NCBI GenBank assembly: GCA_000708835.1
Contig: DF237021.1
Coordinates: forward strand, 62,001 to 126,000
Length of the DNA stretch: 64,000 nucleotides
DNA from: Klebsormidium nitens
Lineage: Eukaryota > Plantae > Klebsormidiophyceae
Reading direction: 5' to 3'
Part shown: in pieces, positions 4,428-51,361 of the stretch
Position numbering within the stretch: position 1 is the first letter of the stretch
Layout of the letters: the number at the start of each line of letters is the position of its first letter
Program-made: the position numbers and the translations under genes
Notes under the pieces: model-generated
Told to the model about the DNA's origin: nothing
What the model saw: only the letters and a program-made list of their open reading frames with translations
The model's database searches: none

Positions 4428-7400
4428 TCAGAAGCTGACCGTATGCATGATTGCATCAGCTACCTGCAATTCGAGTCAAGCACAAGTTAGTGTTCCCGGC
4501 ATACAAAGAACACTGCCTGGAGTAATGAATTCCCCATCTCTTTCGGATGCAAACCGACTCATACCAGTTGGGGCAGCGTTCCCCATTGCGAGAATCAGAA
4601 AATAAATCGCGAACACGATCAAGGTTTTCCTAACAGACTGAAGCCTAATCAAGCGACGGATCCCGACTGAAAGTAAGTGCATACGTTCAATATGAGCACC
4701 TTTACGTTTTTCGAGAAGACTACTTCACTTGCCGGTTCCTGAGCGCCTGATCCAGATATTGCAGACGCCAAGAGTCAAGAGTACATAATCTCAACATCGG
4801 AGTATGTTTCGACGAGGACCCTGGACGCGAAATGCTCTCAGCTTGTACTATCAGGGAGACTCAGATTCTTCAAAGCGTGCTCACCTTGCTTTCCGTCGGG
4901 AGGTAGAAGGGCTCAAACACAAGGGGGAAGGGAGTGTCCAACCCGCAGACTCGGGCAACGGGGGCCTCCAGCTGGTAAAGAACGATAAAGCCTTGTCAAG
5001 CGTAGAGATATGTAGATATTAACATTGCAATTACTGATGTGTTTGAAACACTCGGCCTTCAAGATCGTACAATGTCGTTCGTGTACGCAGAGCCTTCCTA
5101 AACGCTCAAAGCAATGTTCTCGGAAGCTCTCGCTGTTCGTAAAGGGTCAACCGGACCCTGAAAATTAGGGAAGGGTCCACGTGCCTGGGCTCGGGATCCA
5201 GAAGCGGTATAGCAGTCACTCAACGCAGACGCAAAAGTGGAGTGGGTACTTTCGGACCCCAGTTTTTGAGAGAATGAGGGTCGTCAGAACTGCCGTGACG
5301 GACAATGTGCTGTTGCGACGGCGGCTGACGGAATGATCCCACCTCAACGAACAGCATCCATGTAGCCTTTAGGGTCAGTCAAGCCCTTAATCGACCAACA
5401 CAGAGCCTGACGGGTGCTGCCCAACGTTGCTCTTCAGTATTCTTCACTCATCAGAAGTCGGAGATATATGCAGCTCTTCGCGTCGAACTGCCCACCCCAC
5501 TCCTCGATGCCAAGTTGTGGTCCGCAACCTCGTGATGTCAAACCACTTCCAACGTCGATTGGACGGTTCGAGATCGGAGAATATGTTCCGAGCTTCAGAA
5601 GACGATAATAAGCTTGACGCAAACAGCTGTAGTATTGAACGTTGACTTTGGCGCCGGCGAGACTCGATCCCAAGATCGATTACGACGCCGGAGAAGTGCG
5701 AAGCGACGCAACTGCTGACCTTGAGAAAGGACCGCTCCGCGATCTTTGCAGCAATCTCGGCTCCGAAGCCGCTCGTGATGGGAGCCTCGTGGCTGATGAC
5801 GAGTCGCCCCGTCTTGCTGACGGAAGCGGCCACGGTGTCAACATCCCAGGGGAGGAGGGTCTGCAGATCGATCAACTCGCACGAAACGCCCTCCTGTAGA
5901 GTGAAGGAACTGAATTCAAATGTGTGCAATGTTCTGACAGAAGTTTCAACCGTTCAAGCGACGGGCATAGTCTGCCGAAGAGGGTCACTACTCGCTGCTC
6001 AGTCTATTCAGGAATTTGATTATGGAAAGGTAAGCAGAAGCTCGGCCCTCAAATGGGCTACAATCGAAAGCGGGAGTTCGGTTTTCTCGATATTTGGGTG
6101 GCGGGATGCCCATTGGAGGCTCCCATGTCGAAAATCTCGAAAACTGGGTCTGCAGTCCGTAGTAAAACTCTCGCTGTTTCAAAGATTGTATGTTTTTCGA
6201 GTGTGTCACTCAACAGTCAACACCAGCAGTCCGTATGACCTATCCTGTCCTGGGTCAAAGCGACTACCTCGAAGTGCCTCGACTAATCACTTCACGCAGA
6301 CTCAGCCTGCTGACATCACGACTCAAGAGTTTCGGCTTGCTTGATGAAAACCTGATGGAGCCCGAGGATGAAGAACATGGACTCCCGTCATCAAAATCTC
6401 ACCCCGCCTTGGCTTTTACGGGATCACGCCGATTCATAACGGCGGTAGGTTGCATGTTAAGATGCACGTTCACCGTCGATGGAAAGGTTGATGGCCGAGG
6501 CAGGGTCCAGGAACCCACCTTCTTCGTCCTTGGGGTTTTCTAGACCAAATGAATGAGGCCGCCTACCTTCTCAACAGCGTCGCATGCTCGCTCGAGCACC
6601 AGCATCTGCGCCCCCCAGCCCACTACCGTGACGTCACTCCCCTCTCGAAGAACCTGAAATGCAAAACACTTCTTTTTTAAAAATCAAGCGAAAGTCGGAC
6701 AGGTTGTGATGTCCGCCATTGAGAGGAGCGTTGGAGGACGCGTCCACGATCTGGCCGCTTGAGAGCTGCGTCGAGAAGTCAGCACAGCGTAACGCTTGCG
6801 ATCAAAAACGACAACAGTGATCCTCAGGCCTTCTGCGATGTAATTAGAGCGCAAGGGTTGCAAGCCGAGCCGGACGAAAACGCACGGGCGGGCAGCGTTT
6901 GGTAGGATCCCGGAGAAACTTTCAAAACGATGCTACGGATAAAGCTGACTGCAAGAGTGGAGCCCGCGAGAAGAGCGTCTTGAAACAGCGTACGATTCTT
7001 GACAACCCAGCACGAACCCGGATTTGGACTTGTTGCACTGGTAGTGGCGTAATGCGTACCTCTGCTCGCCCCAGTTCCGTTTCGTAGTCCCCAATGGGCA
7101 CCTCTTCGACGGCCATTCGATAAAGACCCTGCACGCAACGCGGAATTTCAAGATTGAGACGGGCGAGACGAACAGCGAAAAGATACAGACAAAGCGTTAA
7201 CGCGCATCCACTTTAAATCCTCTACAAGACTGGGTACGTCATCCAAGGACAAAAGTCAAAGGGTTCTGATCCGCCTGCTTCTCTCGTTTGCTGCCCTCTC
7301 GGCGAACCGCTATTGAAGCAAGCTGCCGTTAAAGCAAGTCTAAAAGGAAGCTGATTCTGATTTCCGACATGCGACAAACAACAATTAAGCGGAAGAACTG

Positions 7401-10257
7401 TGATTCAGCAGACCGAGCTCGAAGGGAAAAACCAGCAGTTCTGAAGTTAAGCAAAGCACGTAGAAAGGCTCTACTTCGCCTGAGTTCGAACAAGTATTCT
7501 GCAAGCTCAAACAACATGAACCCGCGAAGACCCTGACTTGTGATACTAACAACAAAAGAATGCTGAAACAAAGTAGAGCTTCGCTTTCGCTCTGCTCTCA
7601 TTCCACGGACGCCCACTCCTACTTGGTTCAGAGTCCACTTACCTTGGGCTCAAAAAACACGGTGGGGTTCCGGTCCCGAATCGACGCCAGAAGGAGACCT
7701 TTCGCTTTTGAGGGACTTCGGGGGACGACCACCTGTTACAGAAAGGGGTGACTACGTTGACGCGGTCAGAGTGGAGTCGTCCGAAAGCAAAGTGTCCAGA
7801 ATGCTCGCGGCAGCAAATTTGATAGCACGGGTCTCCGGAAGGCTTCACTTTGAGAAGAGACGCTCACGAGGGCACCACAGAACACCTTATCGGCTTCCAT
7901 CTCGTACCCTCGACAAGCCATCTGACCCCGTCTCACAAAGTCGACAAAGAATCTGGCCAGGCTCCGAAACACTCAATCTTTGGAAACGGACACCAAAAGC
8001 CCTCAGCAATGGAAGCAGAAGCCGCCAAAAGAGGGGGGCGAAGCTGCTCGCTCTTTACACTACAGTGCTGAAGGTTTGCGGTGAATATCGGTGCCACTCT
8101 CAATCAAGGGATACGGCGAAATCAGAGGAGTCTAGACGTAACATGACACGAGGGCATGTAGGAAAGCTCACTTTGAGGCCTGGCACGTGCGTGAAGAACG
8201 CCTCGGGAGACTGCGAGTGGTAGTGGCCCCCATGCCCGACAGCACCGTACGGCGTGCGTATCGTCAAACCTAGACAAGCAACCCGAAAAGTTGGTTAGCG
8301 AAAGAAGGTATGACAAACTTGCAGAGCTTACGGCTTACGTCGTTTGACGAGAGGAAGAAGGGGGAAGTAGAACCGACAACAACCAGGAGTTTCTGAACAG
8401 TTAAGACATGGTTTGGGACGCCTAGTAGTGTCCAAGAAAGTCGCAAGACAGGGGCTGAATGTTAAAAGAGTGTATCAACATGGCTAGGGATATGTTGGAT
8501 TTTGAATTTACAGAAGACCCCAAGCCGCCAGCCCCAAAACTGCTGTAAGATTGAATGCAACGGAAAGTACTTGAGAAGTTTGATGAGCGTCCAAAGGGTC
8601 TAAGTAAACTCAAGGCTTTCAGAAGGCATTCTCGTAAAAGGTATCCGCGAGAGACCCAGCTCTACATATCGATGCCAGCTCGAGGCGCCGGTGGCGCATA
8701 TCAGTGGATAGAAAGACAACCGGAAGCTTTGTGTGGCGACAGAAGAGTTTGGACACGTCCGTTGGGCAGGCCTGCTTCGAAATCCCGACCTCAATCAGAG
8801 AAAAGAGACAGAAGCTATAGAGAGGAGTGTTGGGATCCAAAGGAGGACCAGTAACGGGTTGCCCACCACCGCAGTCGAACTGGTTCCCGCTTCGGTACCG
8901 GCATTTTGCAGCCTCGTTAACAATCTGCACAGATTGGACGGTAAGATAATTCGTGCACGAACCTCTAGGAGACGATGATCCTCCTCAACCATGCGAAGGG
9001 GATCGGCTGGTAGAGGCGTGCATACATGAAGAGAGATGCAATCAGTCCTTTGTGCAGCTTTTGAAGACTCCAAGTCTGATGCTGAAAAACCCTTGAATAT
9101 AGATGAACTGTCCAATACCTCCTACCTGGTCAAAAGCGGGGAATATGTAGTCCGCAAACTGTATCTCAGCGATTGCCCTGCTTCCCATTGCAGCCAGCCC
9201 GATCCCAAACCCAATAATCCCCTGTACAACAGAAAGCACGGGCTCTTCTGGGAAGCTTTTTGCACGGCGCACTTGACCGCAACTGTTTGACCGTTGGGCT
9301 TGCTTTCAAGGGTTTCTCTCAGACAGCTCCTCAATGTTGCCTGAAGAATGAAGCAGGATCTTGAGATATCTTTCCATTTTAATGAAGGAGCGTTGCAAAA
9401 AACCTTGAATCAAAGGAGATTATGTGGCCCAACCCGCCTTCTGAAGCACCTCACCTGTTCACATAGGGGTGTGTTGAAAACTCGGTGCCTGCCAAAGCGC
9501 TCAGCTAGGCCTGTGGTACACCGGAAAACCCCTCCAAAGCTGACGTCTTCTCCAAAGATGTACGAACTGCAAAGCACACAGAAGTGCTTTTAAATTACGA
9601 CTGTCTTGTGATTTGAGCTGTTCTTGTTGACTCAGTGCTTATAAGAGTGCGAGCTCGGCTTCTGGTGGTAAGAAGTTGAGCTGGAACGCTAGGACCCTCG
9701 AACCCCATCGGGACGGTTTCCCAGGTAAGGCTCTCTGTCTTTTGAGTGTGTCAGCTTCTCTGAGCTCCACCGACCAGTATCAACTGATATGCTGAAAACC
9801 TCAATATGGTTTTGGCAGGTCTTTCATGAACGTGTAATGAACCCACTATAACTAGATGCTTTCACATGTTGAATTTACTTCCCCTGCAATTGAGCCATTT
9901 CAAACCCTAATAGTGAGCAAAGGCCCAACAGAGTCCTCGCATTGCAAACTAAGGAGTCTGCTACAAATTGAAGTGCATAAGTGCCGAAGCTGACATAGGA
10001 GTGCATGCAGCTCAAATGGCTTCAAATTCTCACTTGGGGTCCGTGTCCAGGGCTATGTGAAGGGCGTCATTGACTGCAGTGAACAGGTTCATGCGCTTCA
10101 ACTCGGCCGTTCCATCATACCCCTCAGGTGCAGAAGGCTGTGCTTGCATTGCTGCACCCGAGAAACACCTCGCTGTCTCCAAAGAGCTGATTCGCCGTGG
10201 CTGCAGCTCGCCTAAGAACCGGGCACACCGGAGAAGGGCTGCTGTTCCCCTCTGCAT
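4428..10257 (-). CDS. BCKDHB: Branched-chain 2-oxoacid dehydrogenase E1 beta subunit, mitochondrial (multi-exon)
   Basis: Exons encode [200 protein letters not shown]-stop. Basic N-terminal presequence. Confidence 0.97.
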
Positions 10258-43162: not shown

Positions 43163-44444
43163 GCTGAGGGAAGCAGAGGCGGGTGATTACTTTGCTTTAT
43201 TCTATGCGTTTTGTAAGCTCCCTAGAGGTGCATGTGTGTGGCGGAAAAGAGAGTTTGAAGTATCAAGACAGCTAGAAACAATAATCCGGGCGGTGCAGTG
43301 TGATAGGTGTCTGCAGCACTGTGGAAGGAGACAAAGTTGGCACTGAATCTGCATTACGAGACTGGAGTTTGACAGGTCTCCGACGAAGAAGCTCAAAACT
43401 AATCGGCTACAATTGAGACTGGTGGCAAAACGCATCTTGTGTATATACATGATGTTGCGAATTAACTTTCTCCGCAACACTGTCCATCTTTTATGCTTCC
43501 AAATTGGGATCTTGCTCATTTTTTGCCATTCCGAATTGGGCCCGGGGCCTGCAAATAGTCATGTGAAACATAAACAAGACGCTTCCAAGCCATATGGAGG
43601 TCTGCCCTAGCTCGCCTTTACCCATATGATCAAAGACGAACCACACAAGCCGCAAGTGGTGAGAATGCTTCAAGCTCTGCCATTCGTAGCCAACCCATAC
43701 ATGGACTTCGCTAGCCATGCAGCAGATCACTAGCCAATGCACAAAACCATGACGATCAGACATGTCCATGATGTGAATCAGCAACGCATGGATCTACAGA
43801 AACTCGAACCTTCGATCACAACAGTTGATTGATCGAGCAATTAAAGTATAGTCTCAATCCTAAGTGATTTTGAGTAGAGGCAGCTCTACGTACTGGATAT
43901 ATTGCCATAATGAAGCTTTTTCATGAAGCACGTGCCACATGCGTTGCATGCATAAATAGCTGCAGCCATGGATCCTGATACGTTGCAACAGGCAGCCTAG
44001 GTCTCGCCAGCCTGATCTGGGTTAAGAGCAGGTTATATGTTTCAACTACAAAACTTCGGAAGCCGCACAGTAGCTGTCGACTCCCGATTCGACGTACTTT
44101 TTGGAGCCCCATCCTCCCTGGATCTCATATCTCTGAGAATTTCGACGCCGCATCGAACTTGTGTATATTTGTACATCCCGCATGTAATACGTCGATTGGG
44201 GTTTGCACTACTGACCCGAATCATCCTCCCTCATGCCAATGCCTCAGCAATGGGCTCAGCTAGACTTCAAGTTCATGCAAGCTGTTCAAAGCCCAAGGTT
44301 CTGCCACCTTATTTAGAATTGGTGGACTCGTGAGAAAGAAGGGGCCAGCTGAATGCCGCAGCACCACGTTGTATTCAGGTTTTGGTAGTTGGACCAGCTG
44401 AGACCCACCTTTTCACTTCCTTCAGCTGATCAGTGTACAATGCA

Positions 44445-47400
44445 ATGGCGCGGAAGGGGATACTTGCGGCTTGGCAGTTTGCGGTGCTCTCAATGTCATT
44501 GCTGGGGTCTGCACTTTCAGGTCAGAATGCTGCACGCTTCTCCATGCTGCAGGTTAGATACCGGCTAGGATGTCAGTGATCATTGACCCTGATGCAGTGC
44601 AGATTTCCTGGTTGAAAACTTGTTATCGTTTGGGTGGAGAAGCAGAGCTTACCAGGCCTGTGAGAATCCGCATGTGTTTTGGGCTCTCAAAGGTGAGGGT
44701 GTTTGTTCAAAGTCGTGATGCAGCACTAAGAGTCCAAAACCCCTTTAAGGGGCTGAGCTTCTCCACGGTGAGTGTGGATCGCATGGTTGATCGAAGAGTT
44801 TCAGCTGACAACAGAAGGCAGCTTGAGTTTTGGGTTAGCTGAATGCCCCATCACACTGGGATTCACAATCTCTCTCTTCAAAAGATTTCTCCTTCTATAC
44901 ACCTTAAATGGTAGAATAGAAGTCTGAACTTTTGAATTTGCACCAAACACATCCCTCCCCCCCCCGCCTTTTGCAGGCAAGATCTCAACAATAAGCCCTG
45001 TAAGGCCGCTTGTGTCTGGCCTGAAGGACTCAGACCTCCCTCTTCCCTACGAGGGGGACACAGTGACCGCTGTCAAGGTGTCCCTCGATGATTCGAGAGT
45101 GACGCAACCTGAGGGCCCCGACAAGGATAACATCATAGCAGACATTCAAGGAGCGGGGCCGACGTCCTGGTCCATTTCGAGATGGAACAAGGGGGATTTG
45201 GCCATGAGGATTGCCCCAAGGTCAGTATCACTATGGCTTGCCCTTTTATGGCAGAGTTCATCTTGGGTTCCTGTTTAAAAAGCAACCTCCAAACGGGGAT
45301 CTTTCAGATCGTTATACATCATCAGCTGCCGTTTTCCTAACCAGGGACCCCGGGATACCCTCTCCCCTACTTAGCAGCTTTCTCTTGAAGTTCACCCACA
45401 TTGCAAATTCAAAATCGAAGGAAGCTCAGCGTTCACCAACTCATATCAACCGTGTGAAAATCGAAGCACGCTGAGCGCTCTCTCAATCCTGGGCTGTTCA
45501 GAAGGGGGTCAACACAAACCTGAAAAGGGACCAGAAGTAACAAGCAGGGCACAAAAATCCTCTACAGGCACTGTTACGCCCAAAGCAACCTTGGCAATCC
45601 AGGGTCAACACAAACCTGAAAACTGACCTGGAGTAAGAAGCAGTGTAAAAATACTCTGCAGGCACAGATACGCCCAAAGCAACCTTGGCATCCCCCCCGG
45701 AGACCAAGGATTCACTACCAGCGATCCAAAGGACTTCTCAGCTCAGGCGTGGCGGCCGCATCCCGAGAGAGGGGTCACGCTGGCCAGTGTCGCTCGGAAT
45801 GGGGTGCGACGGAACCGGGAAGGGCCGGTCATGTATGGAGTGGTTTCGGCGTCAACGGACTCTAGTGGGTATGGCTACAGGTGAGCAGGGAGCGCGTGGT
45901 TTGAGTGTAGATTTGAATGACTGAGTGGAGGGTTTCCGTCTCAAGGAGTTGTTCAGTATTCTATCGACAACTTCCTCTTTTTTCTCTGGAGGATTTAGGA
46001 CTTGCAGCTTCGGTCAGGTCGAAGAACTCTCAGCTCAGACAAGCTCCGATGGCTTTCGTTTCAGACATCGTATGAATCCGTAGCTCAGTAGAAGCCAAAA
46101 ATATTGCATGCTGTCCCAAATTTTTGCACTGTAGATTGCATCTACTTTTCTCGCATGCGGTTCCGTTGATGTGCTCTCAACGACCCATAGAAACCGGCCC
46201 GATCGACACGCGTCAAACAGATCTTTCTTGGGAAACAGTGTCAACCCTTTGTATCTCGGACTTGGAAAAGTTGTGGCCCTAATAAGCGTTTCCCTGTCCG
46301 TGCAGCATGACCGACGGCACATTCGGCCACGAAGACCCGTCTCTCGACAGTAAGTGCCCTCTTGTTGTGCGCTGCCAAAAGCCATCGAAGAACCGGCAGG
46401 CTTTCTTCGAGCGCTCTCATGACGGACGGTATGGTCCGTCCGTTAGACGAGAACCCTCAGCGGCTGCTGTGATCGTTAGCCCCCTAAAAGGCGACTGGCT
46501 TTTTGACAAGCTTCTAGAATTCAGAAGACCTGATCAGATATCAGCAGATCAAGTTTCACCAGGGCATTAAGGATGCCTCTCGCTTTTCTCAAGCCCTTCT
46601 GAGCGTGGTCTCAACAATCTGCGGTTTGCTTGTGCAGTCAACGTTGGGGCGGCAGGCTCCGTGGGGGAGAGCAGCATCGACTTTGGGGTCGCCTGGTTTC
46701 CATACGCTCAAGGTAAAGCAGGACTTCAGTCGATTAGAACGGACAACTCTTTTTTTGTCGTGACATCTCCTTTCCGTGCTCTGCTGCTCTCCTTTCAAAA
46801 CGCCACGACTAATCCTACACGGATTTGCCCTTGCTGTACTCAACCATCAAACGTTCGCCCTTGACTCTCGGTACTCTACCTTGTTCAGCGTCATTGTTTT
46901 AAGCCGTGGCTACGCTCATATACACAGGCTTCAATTCGTTCTTAAACAGGCACTTTTCGTTCCGTTTCCTGGAGTGGCCAAAGCGAAGCTAATCAAGGGG
47001 ATTCAATCCTCATTGCGAGACGATTACTCATTCCGCTCCGTCAAGGGTTTCCTATTGAATCGATACTGCCGTAAAAGAAGCGTCAAAGGTCTGCCCTCTT
47101 TTGCCCTCTGTTCATCTCCACATCTCCTCTTTGACTAATAGGTTGCGGGGCACCTTGAAAAGATTGACATCTGCAATTTCGGCTTTTCTTCGATCCTCCC
47201 GCTTTCTCTGCAGGCTGGATCGGCGGCTTCCTCGCGGCTCGATCCAGCGCTTCTGCTGCTGCCACGTGGCTCACACGTGAGTCGAAAAGCCCAAGCTTGC
47301 CAAACAACGCAGGGGAGGTGGTGACGTGGTGGGCGAGGGGTGCTTACGTCAGGCTCCCGAAGGTGGATCCAAGGAACGACGGGATGCTTTTGACGATAGC

Positions 47401-50400
47401 GTGAGCCTTCTTTTTTTGTTCAGTTTCTATGATGTTTATTTCAGCGAGTACTCTCACGACTCTGCCTGACGGTCGGTCATACCTTTCGCAACAACTGCCA
47501 GGCTGGTTGGTATAAGCTTCGCAATTGTTCTGTCGCGCTTCTTTCCGTGTCTTATTATCGCAGAGTGTTGAAATTGTTAAGAGCCTGTCAAGCCAGACTC
47601 TACCCTTCTGGTATGGACCAATCTAGACATTAGTAGTCCACTCCCAAAAATCCACGCCGTGTGTGACCTTCTGATGCTGAGCTGAGGCCGCCATTAAAAC
47701 CTCGATGCAGATTGAGTACGATTTCCTCATACGTACTAGCGGTTCTCATTCCTGACCTCGAAGAAAGCGGAACGAAAGCGCAATACCAGATTCCACGGCG
47801 TTAAGCAATTTTCTTGACGCTCTTGCTTTGCGGCCGTCAAAGTTCACCTGTACCTGAGTATGTTCATTCGATGCAAAGTACGCTCTCTATGAAAAGGCCA
47901 ATCTTTTTGCGCTTTTGTCTGACAAAGCACAAACTCACACCGTTGATTCGCCTGCAGGACCGATTCCGGGCAGCAGAACAGCGATACCAACATCGTGTCC
48001 GTTTACCCCGACAAAAAGTGAGCCGCCAAAGTCCTCGCTCAACCGGTTCCGTGGGACATTTGCACTGGTTGCAACTCTGAACGAGCTCTTCGGTCTTGGC
48101 ATCTGTATTATTTCACCAATGTCTGTCAAGCAGAATTGTCTATTTGGTGCAAGGTAGAAAGACGATATTCGGACAAGGAGGCCTATCTTGTTACTTTGAT
48201 CCAGTACTCAGGTACTTCACGAGGTCAAGCCGCCTATGAGAAAAGCGCTTCGTTCATGTGCGAAGGATAGTGCGAAGGAGCCGTGTAAAAGCTTTCTCCT
48301 CCGTAAGACTAACGGGAGATTTTACAGTTTCAATCCCATCTATACCGAGGAGAAGTTGTATACTTGTCGGCCCGTATTTCTAAAACCTTCTGCTTTTGTT
48401 TTGGCAGGCATTGGGTCTTAAACGTGCGAGAAGACTCACAGGTGAACCCGGGCGTGGTTACCGTCCTAAACCAATGGGTCTTCTCCTTCCTGTACATACC
48501 GTTCTCAGCAGACGGGTAAGTCCCCATGTAACACGAGACATTTTTGCTGCAAGAGAATGGTTCCGGTCAAAGAGCGCCGTTGAAACGGAAACGCCTCCCA
48601 TCAAATACATCAGCCTGCAGATAGATTGCAAGTACAGGTTGCGTAAGATCAGTTGCTGAACGTGGGAAGTTTGGGATGTAGTACATCACTCCGATGTGGA
48701 GAGGTCATTGGCCTCCGATGACAAGAGATCATCTCCCCCTCCTCAAGAGATCCCTTGTTGCAGGGTTAGCCGTGACCAGTTGCGGTGGGAGCAATCACAA
48801 ATCATGATATGCTAATCATCCAATCTTCAACATCGAACGGCTGAGCTTCTGTCATCCGCCCATGTTTGTCCTCGTCAGGTTGCTTCTGTTAGGCGCAATT
48901 CGCCATGAGAGGCTGCTTGAATCCCCTACTGCTTCACACAATCTTTTTCGTGTTTCATAGCTTACGGGAGTTCTCTTTTTTCGCATTGTGAAAACGCGGA
49001 AAGGGTCATTGTTTCGTTTTCAGGTTAATCGGGGGTTGGGTTAGCGGAACCGACGGCAGCCTACGGCGGAGCGCTGGGGGCCCGGCCGTGAGACGGCTGG
49101 GGGTCGGACAGTACGAGATCGATCCGCGTTTAGGAAGGGCGTCCGAAAGGTTAGCTCCAGCCGCTGTGCTGACACGCGTCCGGCCGCGCTCGCAACATCT
49201 GACTGAAATGTACCTTCTTGTGGTGAATCAGCTGTATCAATCAAGTGCGGAGATTTATCGTCGAACAAACTTTCTCCAAACTTTATCGAACGAACTTTAT
49301 TAAACACTACGAGCAGGCAACCAGATTGCAGCCGCCACCTTTCCTTTGCCCTTCGAGACTTGCAAGCAGTTGCAACGACTTGCCGTCTTCTGATGCTCAA
49401 CCTCTTACTTCTCGGGCGGGCTTCTGCCACGTGTCCCCTTCTTACTCGAGCCACGTGTCTTCCCTAGGGACGGCATCCTCCTCCTCCAAGTCGCGGACAA
49501 GGAGCCTGCCGTTTTGGACGCCCTAATGGCTCGGAGCGCTTTTCTTTCGTACAACTACAGTGGGGATAATAAGATGTTTGTAGAAGCGCGGCGGGTGATG
49601 GCTCATAACCCGGGCGCGGATCTGCAGACCGATGCGGGGGGGGTGCGGCATGACGTTCCGGTGGACAGGGGCGAAGACTTTCCGCTGGTGGATACAGGTG
49701 AGCGGAACGCGGAAGTCACTGGTTTGATGTCGTCTGCCATGCAGGGTCGGCTTGTTTTTTGAAGTCTTTACCCTTTTGAAGTGGTTGTGAATCCAAGTAC
49801 AGGTTTTCCACGCAAATGTCTTCTCGACGATCGTATTTTTCCTTCTAAAGATGGCGTGGGCTAAGCTCTTTTGTCGCCACGCGTAGATGCAAACCTCATT
49901 GCAGCCCGAAATATGCGTCAGCAGATGGTTACGATGTCACAATTGAGCATGGAAAGACCATCCGTTCCGTCGATTACTTACTTTCGCACCATTCGGAGCC
50001 CATTCCAACTTTAAAGCTATCCAGATTGACAAATTTTCCGCACGCTCAACAGCCCAATGCTTTTCGATCTCCGTAAAAAACTATTTGAAACCTTCCAACC
50101 TAGCGACATTGGAACTCACTTCAGTCTTGGATAAGATCCAATCAGACGGCCCGAAGATGACTGAAGCTTGCATGTTTTGCCGCAGACTTCTACTTTGCTT
50201 GGGTCGACTTCCGGAATCCTCTCAGTCCAACCGCGGGCTCGGCGTCGTTCTCTGGGCCTCGTTCGAACAACGGGGCAGGGTTTGGGTTAGGGTTTGTTTT
50301 CGGTCTGGTGGGCACTTTGTTAGTGGGCACGGTCACGTGGATCGTTCTCAAGTACGTATATCATCGGCCACGTGGCGGCCCGTCTTTGGTCGCGATGAGC

Positions 50401-50469
50401 GAATTCGGAAGGGACGACTTGGACTCTGATCTGTTGGAGTCTGCGGAGGAGTACCGCTTCCAAGACTGA
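44445..50469 (+). CDS. Uncharacterised ~560-aa type I membrane protein (signal peptide, repeat-containing ectodomain, one TM helix, short acidic tail)
   Basis: Twelve phase-compatible GT-AG exons: 44445-44520, 44603-44692, 44977-45220, 45722-45880, 46306-46349, 46638-46712, 47214-47400, 47958-48017, 48408-48515, 49024-49149, 49468-49697, 50186-50469 (1683 nt, open throughout). N-terminus MARKGILAAWQFAVLSMSLLGSALS; TM GAGFGLGFVFGLVGTLLVGTVTWIVL followed by KYVYHRPR. Confidence 0.8.
45508..45690. repeat. ~96-bp tandem duplication in an intron of the membrane-protein gene
   Basis: gtcaacacaaacctgaaaa...acgcccaaagcaaccttggca starts at 45508 and 45604. Confidence 0.9.
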
Positions 50470-51361
50470 GTGAGACCTGGAGGAAATAGTAGCACATAAG
50501 GTTCCCAAAAAGGGGGGTCCGTAAAGGCACTGTTCCGATTGAAGCCCTCAATCTGTACATATGGTCGACAAATGAAGCGTTCCTCTGCGAGGAGCTGATA
50601 TCCATTATCTGGACAAGAGTTAGCACGCTGTTATTGTTACGCGGGGCGCAAGACAGGCATATGCCTGCAAGACTGCAGTGCATCCAAGCCGCCGGCGGCA
50701 GCAATGCTGCGGGCCCTTACCGACGACCAGTCTTCAAAAGATAGAAAGTGCACGAATGTGTAATCTTGATACACAAACGCGCGCCGCACATGTATCGTAA
50801 AGTGCTTCTTGTGTCAACTAATATCACGCGGGCCATTTCATCGACTTACACGCCCAGTCATTGGCAAGCTTTAACCGCCAGGCTGTCCACCAGCCCGCGT
50901 GCTGCTCCAGCTAGGTAGAATTCTAGCTAGGAGGTGGGGGTCCATGTAATACACAGCCGATCGTTCGCAGTCCGGTGAATCTTTCATGCAAAGACGCAGC
51001 TGGCACGCGCAAGCCCTTAGTTCGCTTTGGTCATGCATGTGACGGAAATGAGGTTAATGATTGTCACGATTCGTCATATTCCAAGCCAAGGTGCTCTATG
51101 CGCGCACTACGTAGATGTTTTGCCCTTCCTCGAATCGATCTCCGATTTCCCCTTCTGTATGCATTTCTCGTGTGCGCATTCCCAGGTACTAATTTGGTCT
51201 CCGACTCGAGTCTGCAACGGATCTTACTGTAGAAGTCCATTACCAAGCGTCTACAACGTCAAGCTACACTGTACGGTACATGCATGAGCCAATATGATTG
51301 TCTCGATTTCCAGCTAGAGATCAGTGCCAGTAAGCGGGCGCGTTTAGCTCCGACTGGGATC

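Follow-up and report, generated by a model that had tools for sequence, protein, structure and literature searches.

A surface-protein module of probable bacterial origin in an intron-rich membrane-protein gene of Klebsormidium nitens and other streptophyte algae

How does an ectodomain of bacterial appearance come to stand in an intron-rich gene of a streptophyte alga? This question is raised by the Klebsormidium nitens gene KFL_000720170, which lies on the + strand at positions 44445-50469 of the 64,000-nucleotide stretch of contig DF237021.1 that we analysed (hereafter the window, to which all positions refer). A sequence-only reading of the window had described the locus as a hidden gene, in which a bacterial surface-protein module was acquired by an alga, filled with introns and re-anchored by a eukaryotic signal peptide and transmembrane (TM) helix. 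Our analysis supports the core of this proposal. The ectodomain is homologous along its full length to a bacterial surface-protein module, flanked in this intron-rich gene by a signal peptide of eukaryotic type on one side and by a TM helix and its cytosolic tail on the other, and the direction of transfer is read from the distribution of the module. The gene is not hidden, as it is already annotated in GenBank as the hypothetical protein GAQ81148.1 with an identical structure.

The gene, its transcripts and its product

KFL_000720170 is a transcribed, spliced nuclear gene under purifying selection, located on a 240-kb scaffold. We aligned transcript contigs from four sequencing runs of four studies (X1, X3, X7 and X11) to positions 44380-50379 of the window, and every aligned piece was 100% identical to it. 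Each run contained the same ten GT..AG joints, which yield 11 exons. The coding sequence extends from the ATG at 44445 to the TGA at 50467-50469 and comprises 1653 nt, or 550 codons and the stop, with all phases consistent and a GC content of 59% in exons vs 48% in introns. The whole transcript was recovered as a single spliced contig of 1945-2093 nt in X3, X7 and X11 and as two contigs in X1; the spliced contigs reach at least 89 nt upstream of 44380 and end at ~50720-50755 on the downstream side. In 20 listed sequencing runs, sampled words of the locus stretch were present at 9-43% per run, approximately the amount expected from exons and untranslated regions. The start and stop codons proposed from the sequence proved exact, and the RNA-seq contigs bear out an exon chain in consistent phase, although the 12 exons and ~560 amino acids (aa) first proposed have to be corrected to 11 exons and 550 aa.

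The public protein P0125 (GAQ81148.1, KFL_000720170, UniRef100_A0A1Y1HZ56; "hypothetical protein", Klebsormidium nitens, 550 aa) holds all exon translations in order with exactly one split-codon residue between neighbours and is identical to the transcript-based model. We used it for full-length searches, trees and fold prediction. The product is a type I membrane protein composed of a signal peptide, an ectodomain of ~455 aa, one TM helix and an acidic tail of 39 aa, so each of the features that had been proposed, DSDLL in the tail included, is present in the 550-aa protein. The N-terminus has a basic n-region, a hydrophobic core and a cleavage-type end (ALS followed by G). A Gly/Ser linker encoded in exon 11 connects the last beta strand to the TM helix, and the topology of the helix was assigned by applying the positive-inside rule to the sequence. 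P0125 contains zero cysteines and one N-glycosylation sequon. The exons, domains and membrane-proximal features are as follows.

Exon 1: 44445..44520, + strand; start codon and signal peptide, 25 codons and 1 base, phase-1 donor; joint 44517->44974 (cut +3) in four runs.
Exon 2: 44977..45220, + strand; N-terminal linker and first strands of domain 1, WSISRWNKGDLAMRIAP; 32-50% identity to the bacterial module.
Exon 3: 45662..45880, + strand; domain 1, AWRPHPERGVTLASVARNG ... SSGYGY; acceptor 45660-45661; joint 45218->45660 (cut +2) in four runs.
Exon 4: 46306..46349, + strand; 44 nt, domain 1; aligned with bacterial MVDGSFGNGDLDIN.
Exon 5: 46638..46712, + strand; last strand of domain 1, IDFGVAWFPYAQ; from transcript joints and module alignment.
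Exon 6: 47214..47400, + strand; start of domain 2, WIGG ... DGMLLTI; from transcript joints and module alignment.
Exon 7: 47958..48017, + strand; 60 nt, domain 2, NIVSVYP; from transcript joints and module alignment.
Exon 8: 48408..48515, + strand; end of domain 2, HWVLNVRED ... FSFLYIPFSAD; from transcript joints and module alignment.
Exon 9: 49024..49149, + strand; start of domain 3, LIGGWV ... GQYEI; from transcript joints and module alignment.
Exon 10: 49468..49697, + strand; domain 3, DGILLLQVA, AFLSYNY and KMFVEAR, with a low-confidence loop (model residues 404-420, predicted local distance difference test (pLDDT) < 55).
Exon 11: 50186..50469, + strand; last strand of domain 3, DFYFAWVDFRNPL, linker, TM helix, cytosolic tail and stop; joint 49694->50183 (cut +3).
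Domain 1: 45057..46705, + strand; residues ~53-217, exons 2-5; limits from partial structural matches, model residues 27-191.
Domain 2: 46709..48510, + strand; residues ~219-336, exons 5-8; model residues 193-310.
Domain 3: 48511..50223, + strand; residues ~337-469, exons 8-11; model residues 311-443.
TM helix: 50275..50349, + strand; residues ~487-511; Kyte-Doolittle maximum mean 2.2 over 19 residues; basic KYVYHRPR on the cytosolic side.
Cytosolic tail: 50350..50466, + strand; 39 aa; DLDSDLL at 50416-50436; aromatic/acidic end YRFQD.

The whole orthologue is also found on a 31.7-kb contig of a congener (L001), with 11 exons of identical lengths and all GT/AG sites kept. Between the two species, the exons have a synonymous divergence (dS) of 0.52 and a nonsynonymous divergence (dN) of 0.076, giving dN/dS = 0.15, and the introns are just ~55% identical. 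Exon 11, which encodes the TM helix and the tail, is the best conserved (87 of 93 residues identical, the cytosolic tail almost completely so). The least conserved is exon 1 with the signal peptide, where 15 of 25 residues are identical and pN exceeds pS. An exhaustive HMMER search with exon 10 returned a single true relative, a 109-aa open reading frame (ORF) on the congener contig, in which exon 10 is read into its intron; the remaining matches were two spurious tandem-repeat proteins.

Some contigs of low depth (2-6, vs 18-84 for the spliced ones) are wholly intronic (44560-44786, 46767-47200, 47372-47770, 48523-48983 and 49154-49438). They look like unspliced precursor RNA or DNA carry-over and reveal no alternative exon. 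At the border of intron 2 and exon 3 we observed a tandem duplication of ~95 nt, with copies at 45506-45596 and 45602-45690 that are 84-91% identical. The upstream copy holds a decoy acceptor (CTCTACAG directly followed by GCAC) and a copy of approximately the first 29 nt of exon 3; only the downstream acceptor is used in transcripts, and the decoy would cause a frame shift. The introns at the junctions of domains 1 and 2 (46712/47214) and of domains 2 and 3 (48515/49024) split an equivalent Gly codon (AQ-G-WIGG and AD-G-LIGG). Since their phases differ (1 and 2), they look like separate insertions or a one-base slide and not like copies made by a duplication.

Bacterial relatives and algal orthologues

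The ectodomain is collinear over its whole length with an unnamed bacterial module, at 26-41% identity. A metagenome scan seeded from the exon 11 alignment identified three contigs with intronless ORFs of 948, 924 and 962 aa, each of which holds the complete motif series of the algal ectodomain in identical order. When these ORFs were compared with the window by tblastn, we obtained up to seven collinear high-scoring segment pairs, corresponding to exons 2, 3, 5, 8, 9, 10 and 11, and exons 2-11, aligned one by one, together cover the bacterial module from one end to the other, each with 32-64% identity. An alignment to which the congener's exons had been added misplaced exon 10 and was left out of the analysis. 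An alignment of 31 module sequences over ~440 residues contains 16 invariant and 41 near-invariant columns, and a search with the module profile scored P0125 at E = 2.8e-171. Every ectodomain motif quoted from the sequence was found in the protein. The internal repeat that had been proposed is real at the profile level: domains 2 and 3 are homologous end to end (hhalign, E = 3.2e-5, 104 columns), and the two halves form clean clades with a support of 100 across the module sequences. We therefore expect, from these sequence comparisons, that domains 2 and 3 derive from an old duplication. The repeat was not significant by plain BLASTP of single exons, and profile comparison detected no sequence relation between domain 1 and domains 2 or 3.

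No family was found for the bacterial module ORFs in Pfam or NCBIfam, Pfam gave no hit for any of the 31 module sequences, and the module profile had no relative among PDB sequences. Searches with single exons were also empty against Pfam and NCBIfam (each exon), PDB sequences (exons 2, 3, 6 and 10) and the ESM Atlas (exon 3), as were pattern scans of bacterial genomes seeded from exon 3 and of metagenomes seeded from exon 2. UniRef lists A0A1Y1HZ56 as "Peptidase A1 domain-containing protein", and this automatic name is the sole support for an aspartic (A1) peptidase-like protein. We rejected that identity as extremely improbable, given that neither P0125 (at E <= 1) nor the module sequences have a Pfam hit and that no pepsin-like chain is among the structural matches described below; the name looks like a wrong automatic annotation.

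In bacteria, the module is widespread within two phyla. One metagenomic representative (L004) has more than 200 relatives of ~950 aa, whose source names are hypothetical proteins of Verrucomicrobiales or Limisphaerales metagenome-assembled genomes (MAGs). A second group of 530-570 aa, with PF07589 (PEP-CTERM) and PF00404 (dockerin), bears Planctomycetes or Aeoliella as source names. We then scanned one genome per bacterial species and confirmed 140 loci, the best 80 of which belong almost all to Verrucomicrobiota or Pirellulales; the cultured Lacipirellula limnantheis I41 (L061) is among the Pirellulales carriers. Three proteins (P0145, P0153 and P0155) match PF07589 at 23-31 bits (cut-off 20.7), and two more (P0156 and P0171) fall just under it at ~19.4. 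PF00404 is matched by P0153 at 26.7 bits and is absent from P0125. These matches, and the presence of the module in Pirellulales, bear out the resemblance to Planctomycetota PEP-CTERM/dockerin proteins that the sequence-only reading had suggested. The algal protein itself has no Pfam hit for PEP-CTERM, and its C-terminus lacks the PEP motif. We also considered whether the algal TM helix derives from a PEP-CTERM helix and found no support for this, since an anchor is lacking in the bacteria nearest to the alga and the PEP motif is lacking in the alga itself.

The bacterial proteins carry the module in four architectures. It may follow a signal peptide and precede ~500 further aa; it may stand between an N-terminal extension of 250-530 aa and a beta domain of ~55-65 aa; or it may follow a signal peptide and be followed by dockerin-like repeats, VPEP, a helix and an Arg-rich end. 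In the fourth, seen in the metagenomic P0084 (873 aa), two modules stand in tandem (hidden Markov model matches 1-387 and 380-810). The best bacterial identity to the alga, 40-41%, was found in Verrucomicrobiota (L005 and L006).

Eight bacterial loci (L010, L018, L019, L044, L053, L055, L068 and L076) hold gene copies of Verrucomicrobiota type but come from MAGs with odd labels, namely Akkermansia muciniphila, Methylomirabilota, Kapaibacterium, Bifidobacterium and Cyanophyceae. Four of these (L010, L055, L068 and L076) were placed inside Verrucomicrobiota clades, so their labels or bins are probably wrong. In the Verrucomicrobiae MAG contig L005, the neighbours at 4805-9196 encode a GH51-type alpha-L-arabinofuranosidase, an L-fucose isomerase and a di-haem cytochrome c peroxidase. 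At 7913-10948 of L061 (Lacipirellula limnantheis), the neighbour encodes a 1012-aa Planctomycete extracellular protein with a heparinase-II C-terminal-like domain.

Among eukaryotes, the module was found in streptophyte algae. A search of 5.8 billion proteins with P0125 gave 18 hits, of which the eukaryotic ones are streptophyte algal proteins and transcripts. Identities of 38-48% were obtained for the closest of these, namely Chara braunii CBR_g51926, Mesotaenium endlicherianum ME000152S01285, proteins of several Closterium strains, one EukProt transcript and three Logan transcripts. In all complete eukaryotic models the module stands between a signal peptide and a TM helix, with a short tail at the end. 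In most algal tails, from three algal classes, [DE]-L-x-x-x-L-L recurs with [YF]-x-[FIA]-x-[DE] after it. The first element is present in both Klebsormidium species, Chara, Mesotaenium, Closterium and most other transcripts; Chara has no aromatic end.

To place the algal proteins we computed two maximum-likelihood trees (LG+C20+F+G4, unrooted). The eukaryotes form one clade (100/100), with Klebsormidium, Chara and then Zygnematophyceae with the transcripts in species-tree order. When genome-derived bacterial sequences were included, five Verrucomicrobiota sequences joined the eukaryotes at 98/93, and the Planctomycete PEP-CTERM clade stood separately. The resemblance to Planctomycetota first noted is right in that the module occurs there, but the nearest bacterial relatives by identity and by tree are Verrucomicrobiota. 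The sequence-only reading had named a vertical tree of widespread eukaryotic homologues as an argument against transfer. The best homologues are indeed eukaryotic and their tree is vertical, but they are limited to streptophyte algae and a large bacterial family adjoins them.

Intron positions were mapped in the Chara (43.8 kb) and Closterium (8.4 kb) genes. Chara has eight of the ten K. nitens introns at the same positions; of the remaining two, one lies where the N-termini do not align and one in an exon that the Chara model lacks. Closterium has all eight that could be assessed. These shared positions indicate that the introns and the gene were in place before the algal classes diverged. 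The acquisition therefore predates the split of Klebsormidiophyceae from the lineage of Chara and Zygnematophyceae and is not specific to K. nitens: acquisition by an alga holds as regards a bacterial module in an intron-rich gene, but the gene is shared with Chara, Mesotaenium and Closterium.

Three extra introns, at K. nitens protein positions ~135, 168 and 477, are common to Chara and Closterium and absent in Klebsormidium; they were either lost in Klebsormidium or gained in the lineage of Chara and Zygnematophyceae. The Chara orthologue lies at 2001-45844 of BFEA01000874.1 (L085), and its public model has no exon matching K. nitens exon 8, which is probably a missed annotation. The Mesotaenium model (P0209) diverges from the family in its C-terminal third.

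Predicted fold and putative function

We predicted the structure of P0125 residues 27-482 with AlphaFold2 and the 31-sequence alignment, and obtained an all-beta model (mean pLDDT 87.7, predicted template modelling score 0.90). As modelled, the module would consist of three beta-sandwich domains packed in one chain like the subunits of a TNF/C1q trimer. Comparison with 48,161 PDB chains by VIA-align ranked four single-chain TNF/C1q trimers first, at Z 5.7-6.5, with the next match at Z 3.8. These are a single-chain APRIL-BAFF-BAFF, a C1q head, an adiponectin trimer and a Cbln1 C1q trimer (PDB 4zch, 5hzf, 4dou and 5kca), each aligned over model residues 27-444 with 229-259 aligned residues and 5-9% identity. 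Two points speak against a deeper kinship: Foldseek returned nothing from the PDB at E <= 0.001 for the whole-ectodomain or the domain 3 model, and the whole-module Z stays below 8, so that "C1q/TNF-like" denotes an architectural resemblance and not homology. No Pfam C1q or TNF signature was hit in P0125 or the 31 module sequences.

Folded alone, domain 3 reached a pLDDT of 87.3. Its best match was the C-terminal domain of the phiAB6 tailspike (5js4; Z 8.3, 94 aligned residues), followed by WSSV VP37 (7dda; Z 7.0), tombusvirus P domains and phage fibre tips. H-type lectins, TNF and C1q matched it at Z 4.2-4.7, single TNF/C1q domains at Z 4.2. A shape search of the ESM Atlas gave a TM-score of 0.70 to a Verrucomicrobiota cluster and of 0.68-0.85 (normalised by match) to bacterial clusters of 284-381 aa from other phyla. 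Scores in an ESM Atlas feature search with the bacterial module were below 0.9 and serve as leads only.

What might such a protein do? Trimeric beta-sandwich heads usually bind ligands. The ectodomain would bind an extracellular or lumenal ligand, most likely a glycan or other surface polymer, and the acidic dileucine-type tail would allow its sorting by adaptor complexes, with the plasma membrane or trans-Golgi network at one end of the route and endosomes or the vacuole at the other. Its role would then be that of a receptor, for recognition or for cargo, rather than a catalytic one. By analogy, we infer a ligand-binding, adaptor-sorted receptor from the ligand-binding fold type, the surface-anchored bacterial forms, the polysaccharide-active neighbours and the conserved tail motif. 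The conservation of the TM helix and tail between the two Klebsormidium species suggests that cytosolic partners matter. A point against this reading is the dileucine motif itself, whose acidic residue stands at -5 where the canonical form has -4, and which matches just the looser consensus for plants, [D/E]X3-5L[L/I].

A protein of the same origin could alternatively remain at the plasma membrane, for adhesion, as a cell-wall or mucilage-binding protein or as a sensor of bacterial polymers, and use its tail for export or turnover only. This would agree with bacterial relatives that are surface-anchored (PEP-CTERM, dockerin-like) and in some cases adjoin polysaccharide-active genes, and with the structural likeness of the domains to receptor-binding heads. 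However, the protein has no signalling domain, and it is the TM helix and tail that changed least between the congeners. We regard such a surface role, the chief alternative as to function, as possible but rather unlikely. A more far-reaching proposal, which we consider unlikely, is that a natural single-chain counterpart of the trimeric C1q/TNF-type head arose in bacteria and was taken over by early streptophyte algae as a trafficking receptor for glycans or microbial surface polymers. It would then be an algal pattern-recognition or cell-wall cargo receptor that disappeared with the rise of land plants.

Direction of transfer and comparison with known systems

Based on its distribution, we consider it probable that the module passed from bacteria to the alga. 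It occurs in genomes of at least 140 bacterial species and in several architectures (at least three), as opposed to one single-copy gene in one eukaryotic lineage, and Cyanobacteriota, Actinomycetota and Myxococcota have shorter proteins that are predicted to take this shape, with none seen in eukaryotes. The reverse route would require that a streptophyte alga invented the module and that an alga-associated bacterium of the Planctomycetes-Verrucomicrobia-Chlamydiae (PVC) group captured a processed copy, which then spread in Verrucomicrobiota and Planctomycetota. Transfer of an intron-rich gene from a eukaryote to a bacterium is rare, and we judge this improbable. Several observations nevertheless weigh against a bacterial origin. 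The eukaryotes are a single branch, so the unrooted tree gives no direction. When the paralogous domains 2 and 3 were used to root each other, the free tree never rooted on the eukaryote stem, at a support of 50 or less; trees constrained to hold all bacterial sequences as one clade, which places the root on that stem, had a higher likelihood and were not rejected (p-AU, from the approximately unbiased test, 0.61 and 0.74). The bacterial sequence family was seen only in two related phyla, both associated with algae, which likewise suits the reverse route. In addition, absence from land plants and other eukaryotes is weakly established, as none was found in a word-seeded P0125 search limited to proteins of 302-962 aa.

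If there had been no transfer, the family would be ancient and vertical, or plastid-derived, and would have disappeared from almost every other eukaryotic lineage. With 0.5-0.8 changes per site the stem of the eukaryotes is long, which would fit, although it proves just an old split; no sequence-level homologue was found in other eukaryotes or cyanobacteria by the P0125 search and the bacterial genome scan, the sole MAG labelled Cyanophyceae was placed inside a Verrucomicrobiota clade, and many independent losses would be needed. This makes the explanation very unlikely. Bacterial contamination or mis-assembly is more unlikely still, to the point of being negligible, in view of ten spliceosomal introns that are removed in RNA, the same exon structure in a congener, introns common to Chara and Closterium, and the 240-kb scaffold.

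Taken together, we think it likely that a bacterial module with a predicted single-chain pseudo-trimer fold was acquired by streptophytes and would serve as an adaptor-sorted, ligand-binding receptor. A single transfer from a PVC-group bacterium, closest to Verrucomicrobiota, would have brought the module into streptophytes. Spliceosomal introns would later have been added to the gene, along with a signal peptide of host type, a TM helix and the cytosolic tail that is now conserved; the gene would have been passed down vertically and apparently lost in the line leading to land plants. Verrucomicrobiota and Planctomycetota commonly live with algae and on algal polysaccharides; if such an association held here, the contact behind the transfer would be biologically plausible.

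The gene model as a hypothetical protein, and bacterium-to-streptophyte transfers as a kind, are already known. Our literature search found no paper that names KFL_000720170, CBR_g51926 or ME000152S01285, or that describes this transfer. New, and of moderate interest, are a module with no family entry and its unusual predicted fold. The case is a well-documented addition to the genes that algae ancestral to land plants acquired from bacteria, one in which the acquired module was made into a receptor-like membrane protein rather than an enzyme. Three algal classes have retained the gene over hundreds of millions of years, and land plants have seemingly dropped it. The case likewise outlines a large surface-protein family in Verrucomicrobiota and Planctomycetota that had not been characterised, and the predicted three-domain pseudo-trimer is a starting point for a ligand search.

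Among the bacterial proteins, those of Pirellulales, ~530-600 aa long, such as P0153, P0155, P0156 (Aeoliella sp.) and L061, are like the algal protein in layout. They contain the ~440-residue module at full length (29-35% identity), are of similar size, and, like the algal protein, begin with a signal peptide and have a hydrophobic anchor with basic residues behind it at the C-terminus. The alga differs in having neither dockerin-like repeats nor VPEP and in its eukaryotic-style TM helix with a 39-aa sorting-type tail, and the Pirellulales proteins are not its nearest clade in the tree. The Verrucomicrobiota hypothetical proteins (Limisphaerales and Verrucomicrobiales; P0005, L005 and L006), which occur in the first two of the architectures listed above, share the same module at the top identity of 36-41%, but carry large extra regions and have neither a TM anchor nor introns.

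At the level of fold, single-chain TNF/C1q trimers may share with the predicted structure its three beta-sandwich or jelly-roll domains in one chain around a pseudo-threefold axis. They are man-made fusions, whereas the algal protein is a natural single chain, and the Z values are below the level of kinship. The C-terminal receptor-binding heads of phage tailspikes, phage fibres and virus capsid proteins are like domain 3 at the fold level, with 4-13% identity and no significant Foldseek match. In its history, the gene can be compared with GRAS and PYL in Zygnematophyceae, which are reported as streptophyte genes derived from bacteria. It has in common with transfers of this type a bacterial donor, intron gain and vertical inheritance within streptophytes; in contrast to them, this family has no named domain, seems to be missing in land plants and became part of a type I membrane protein.

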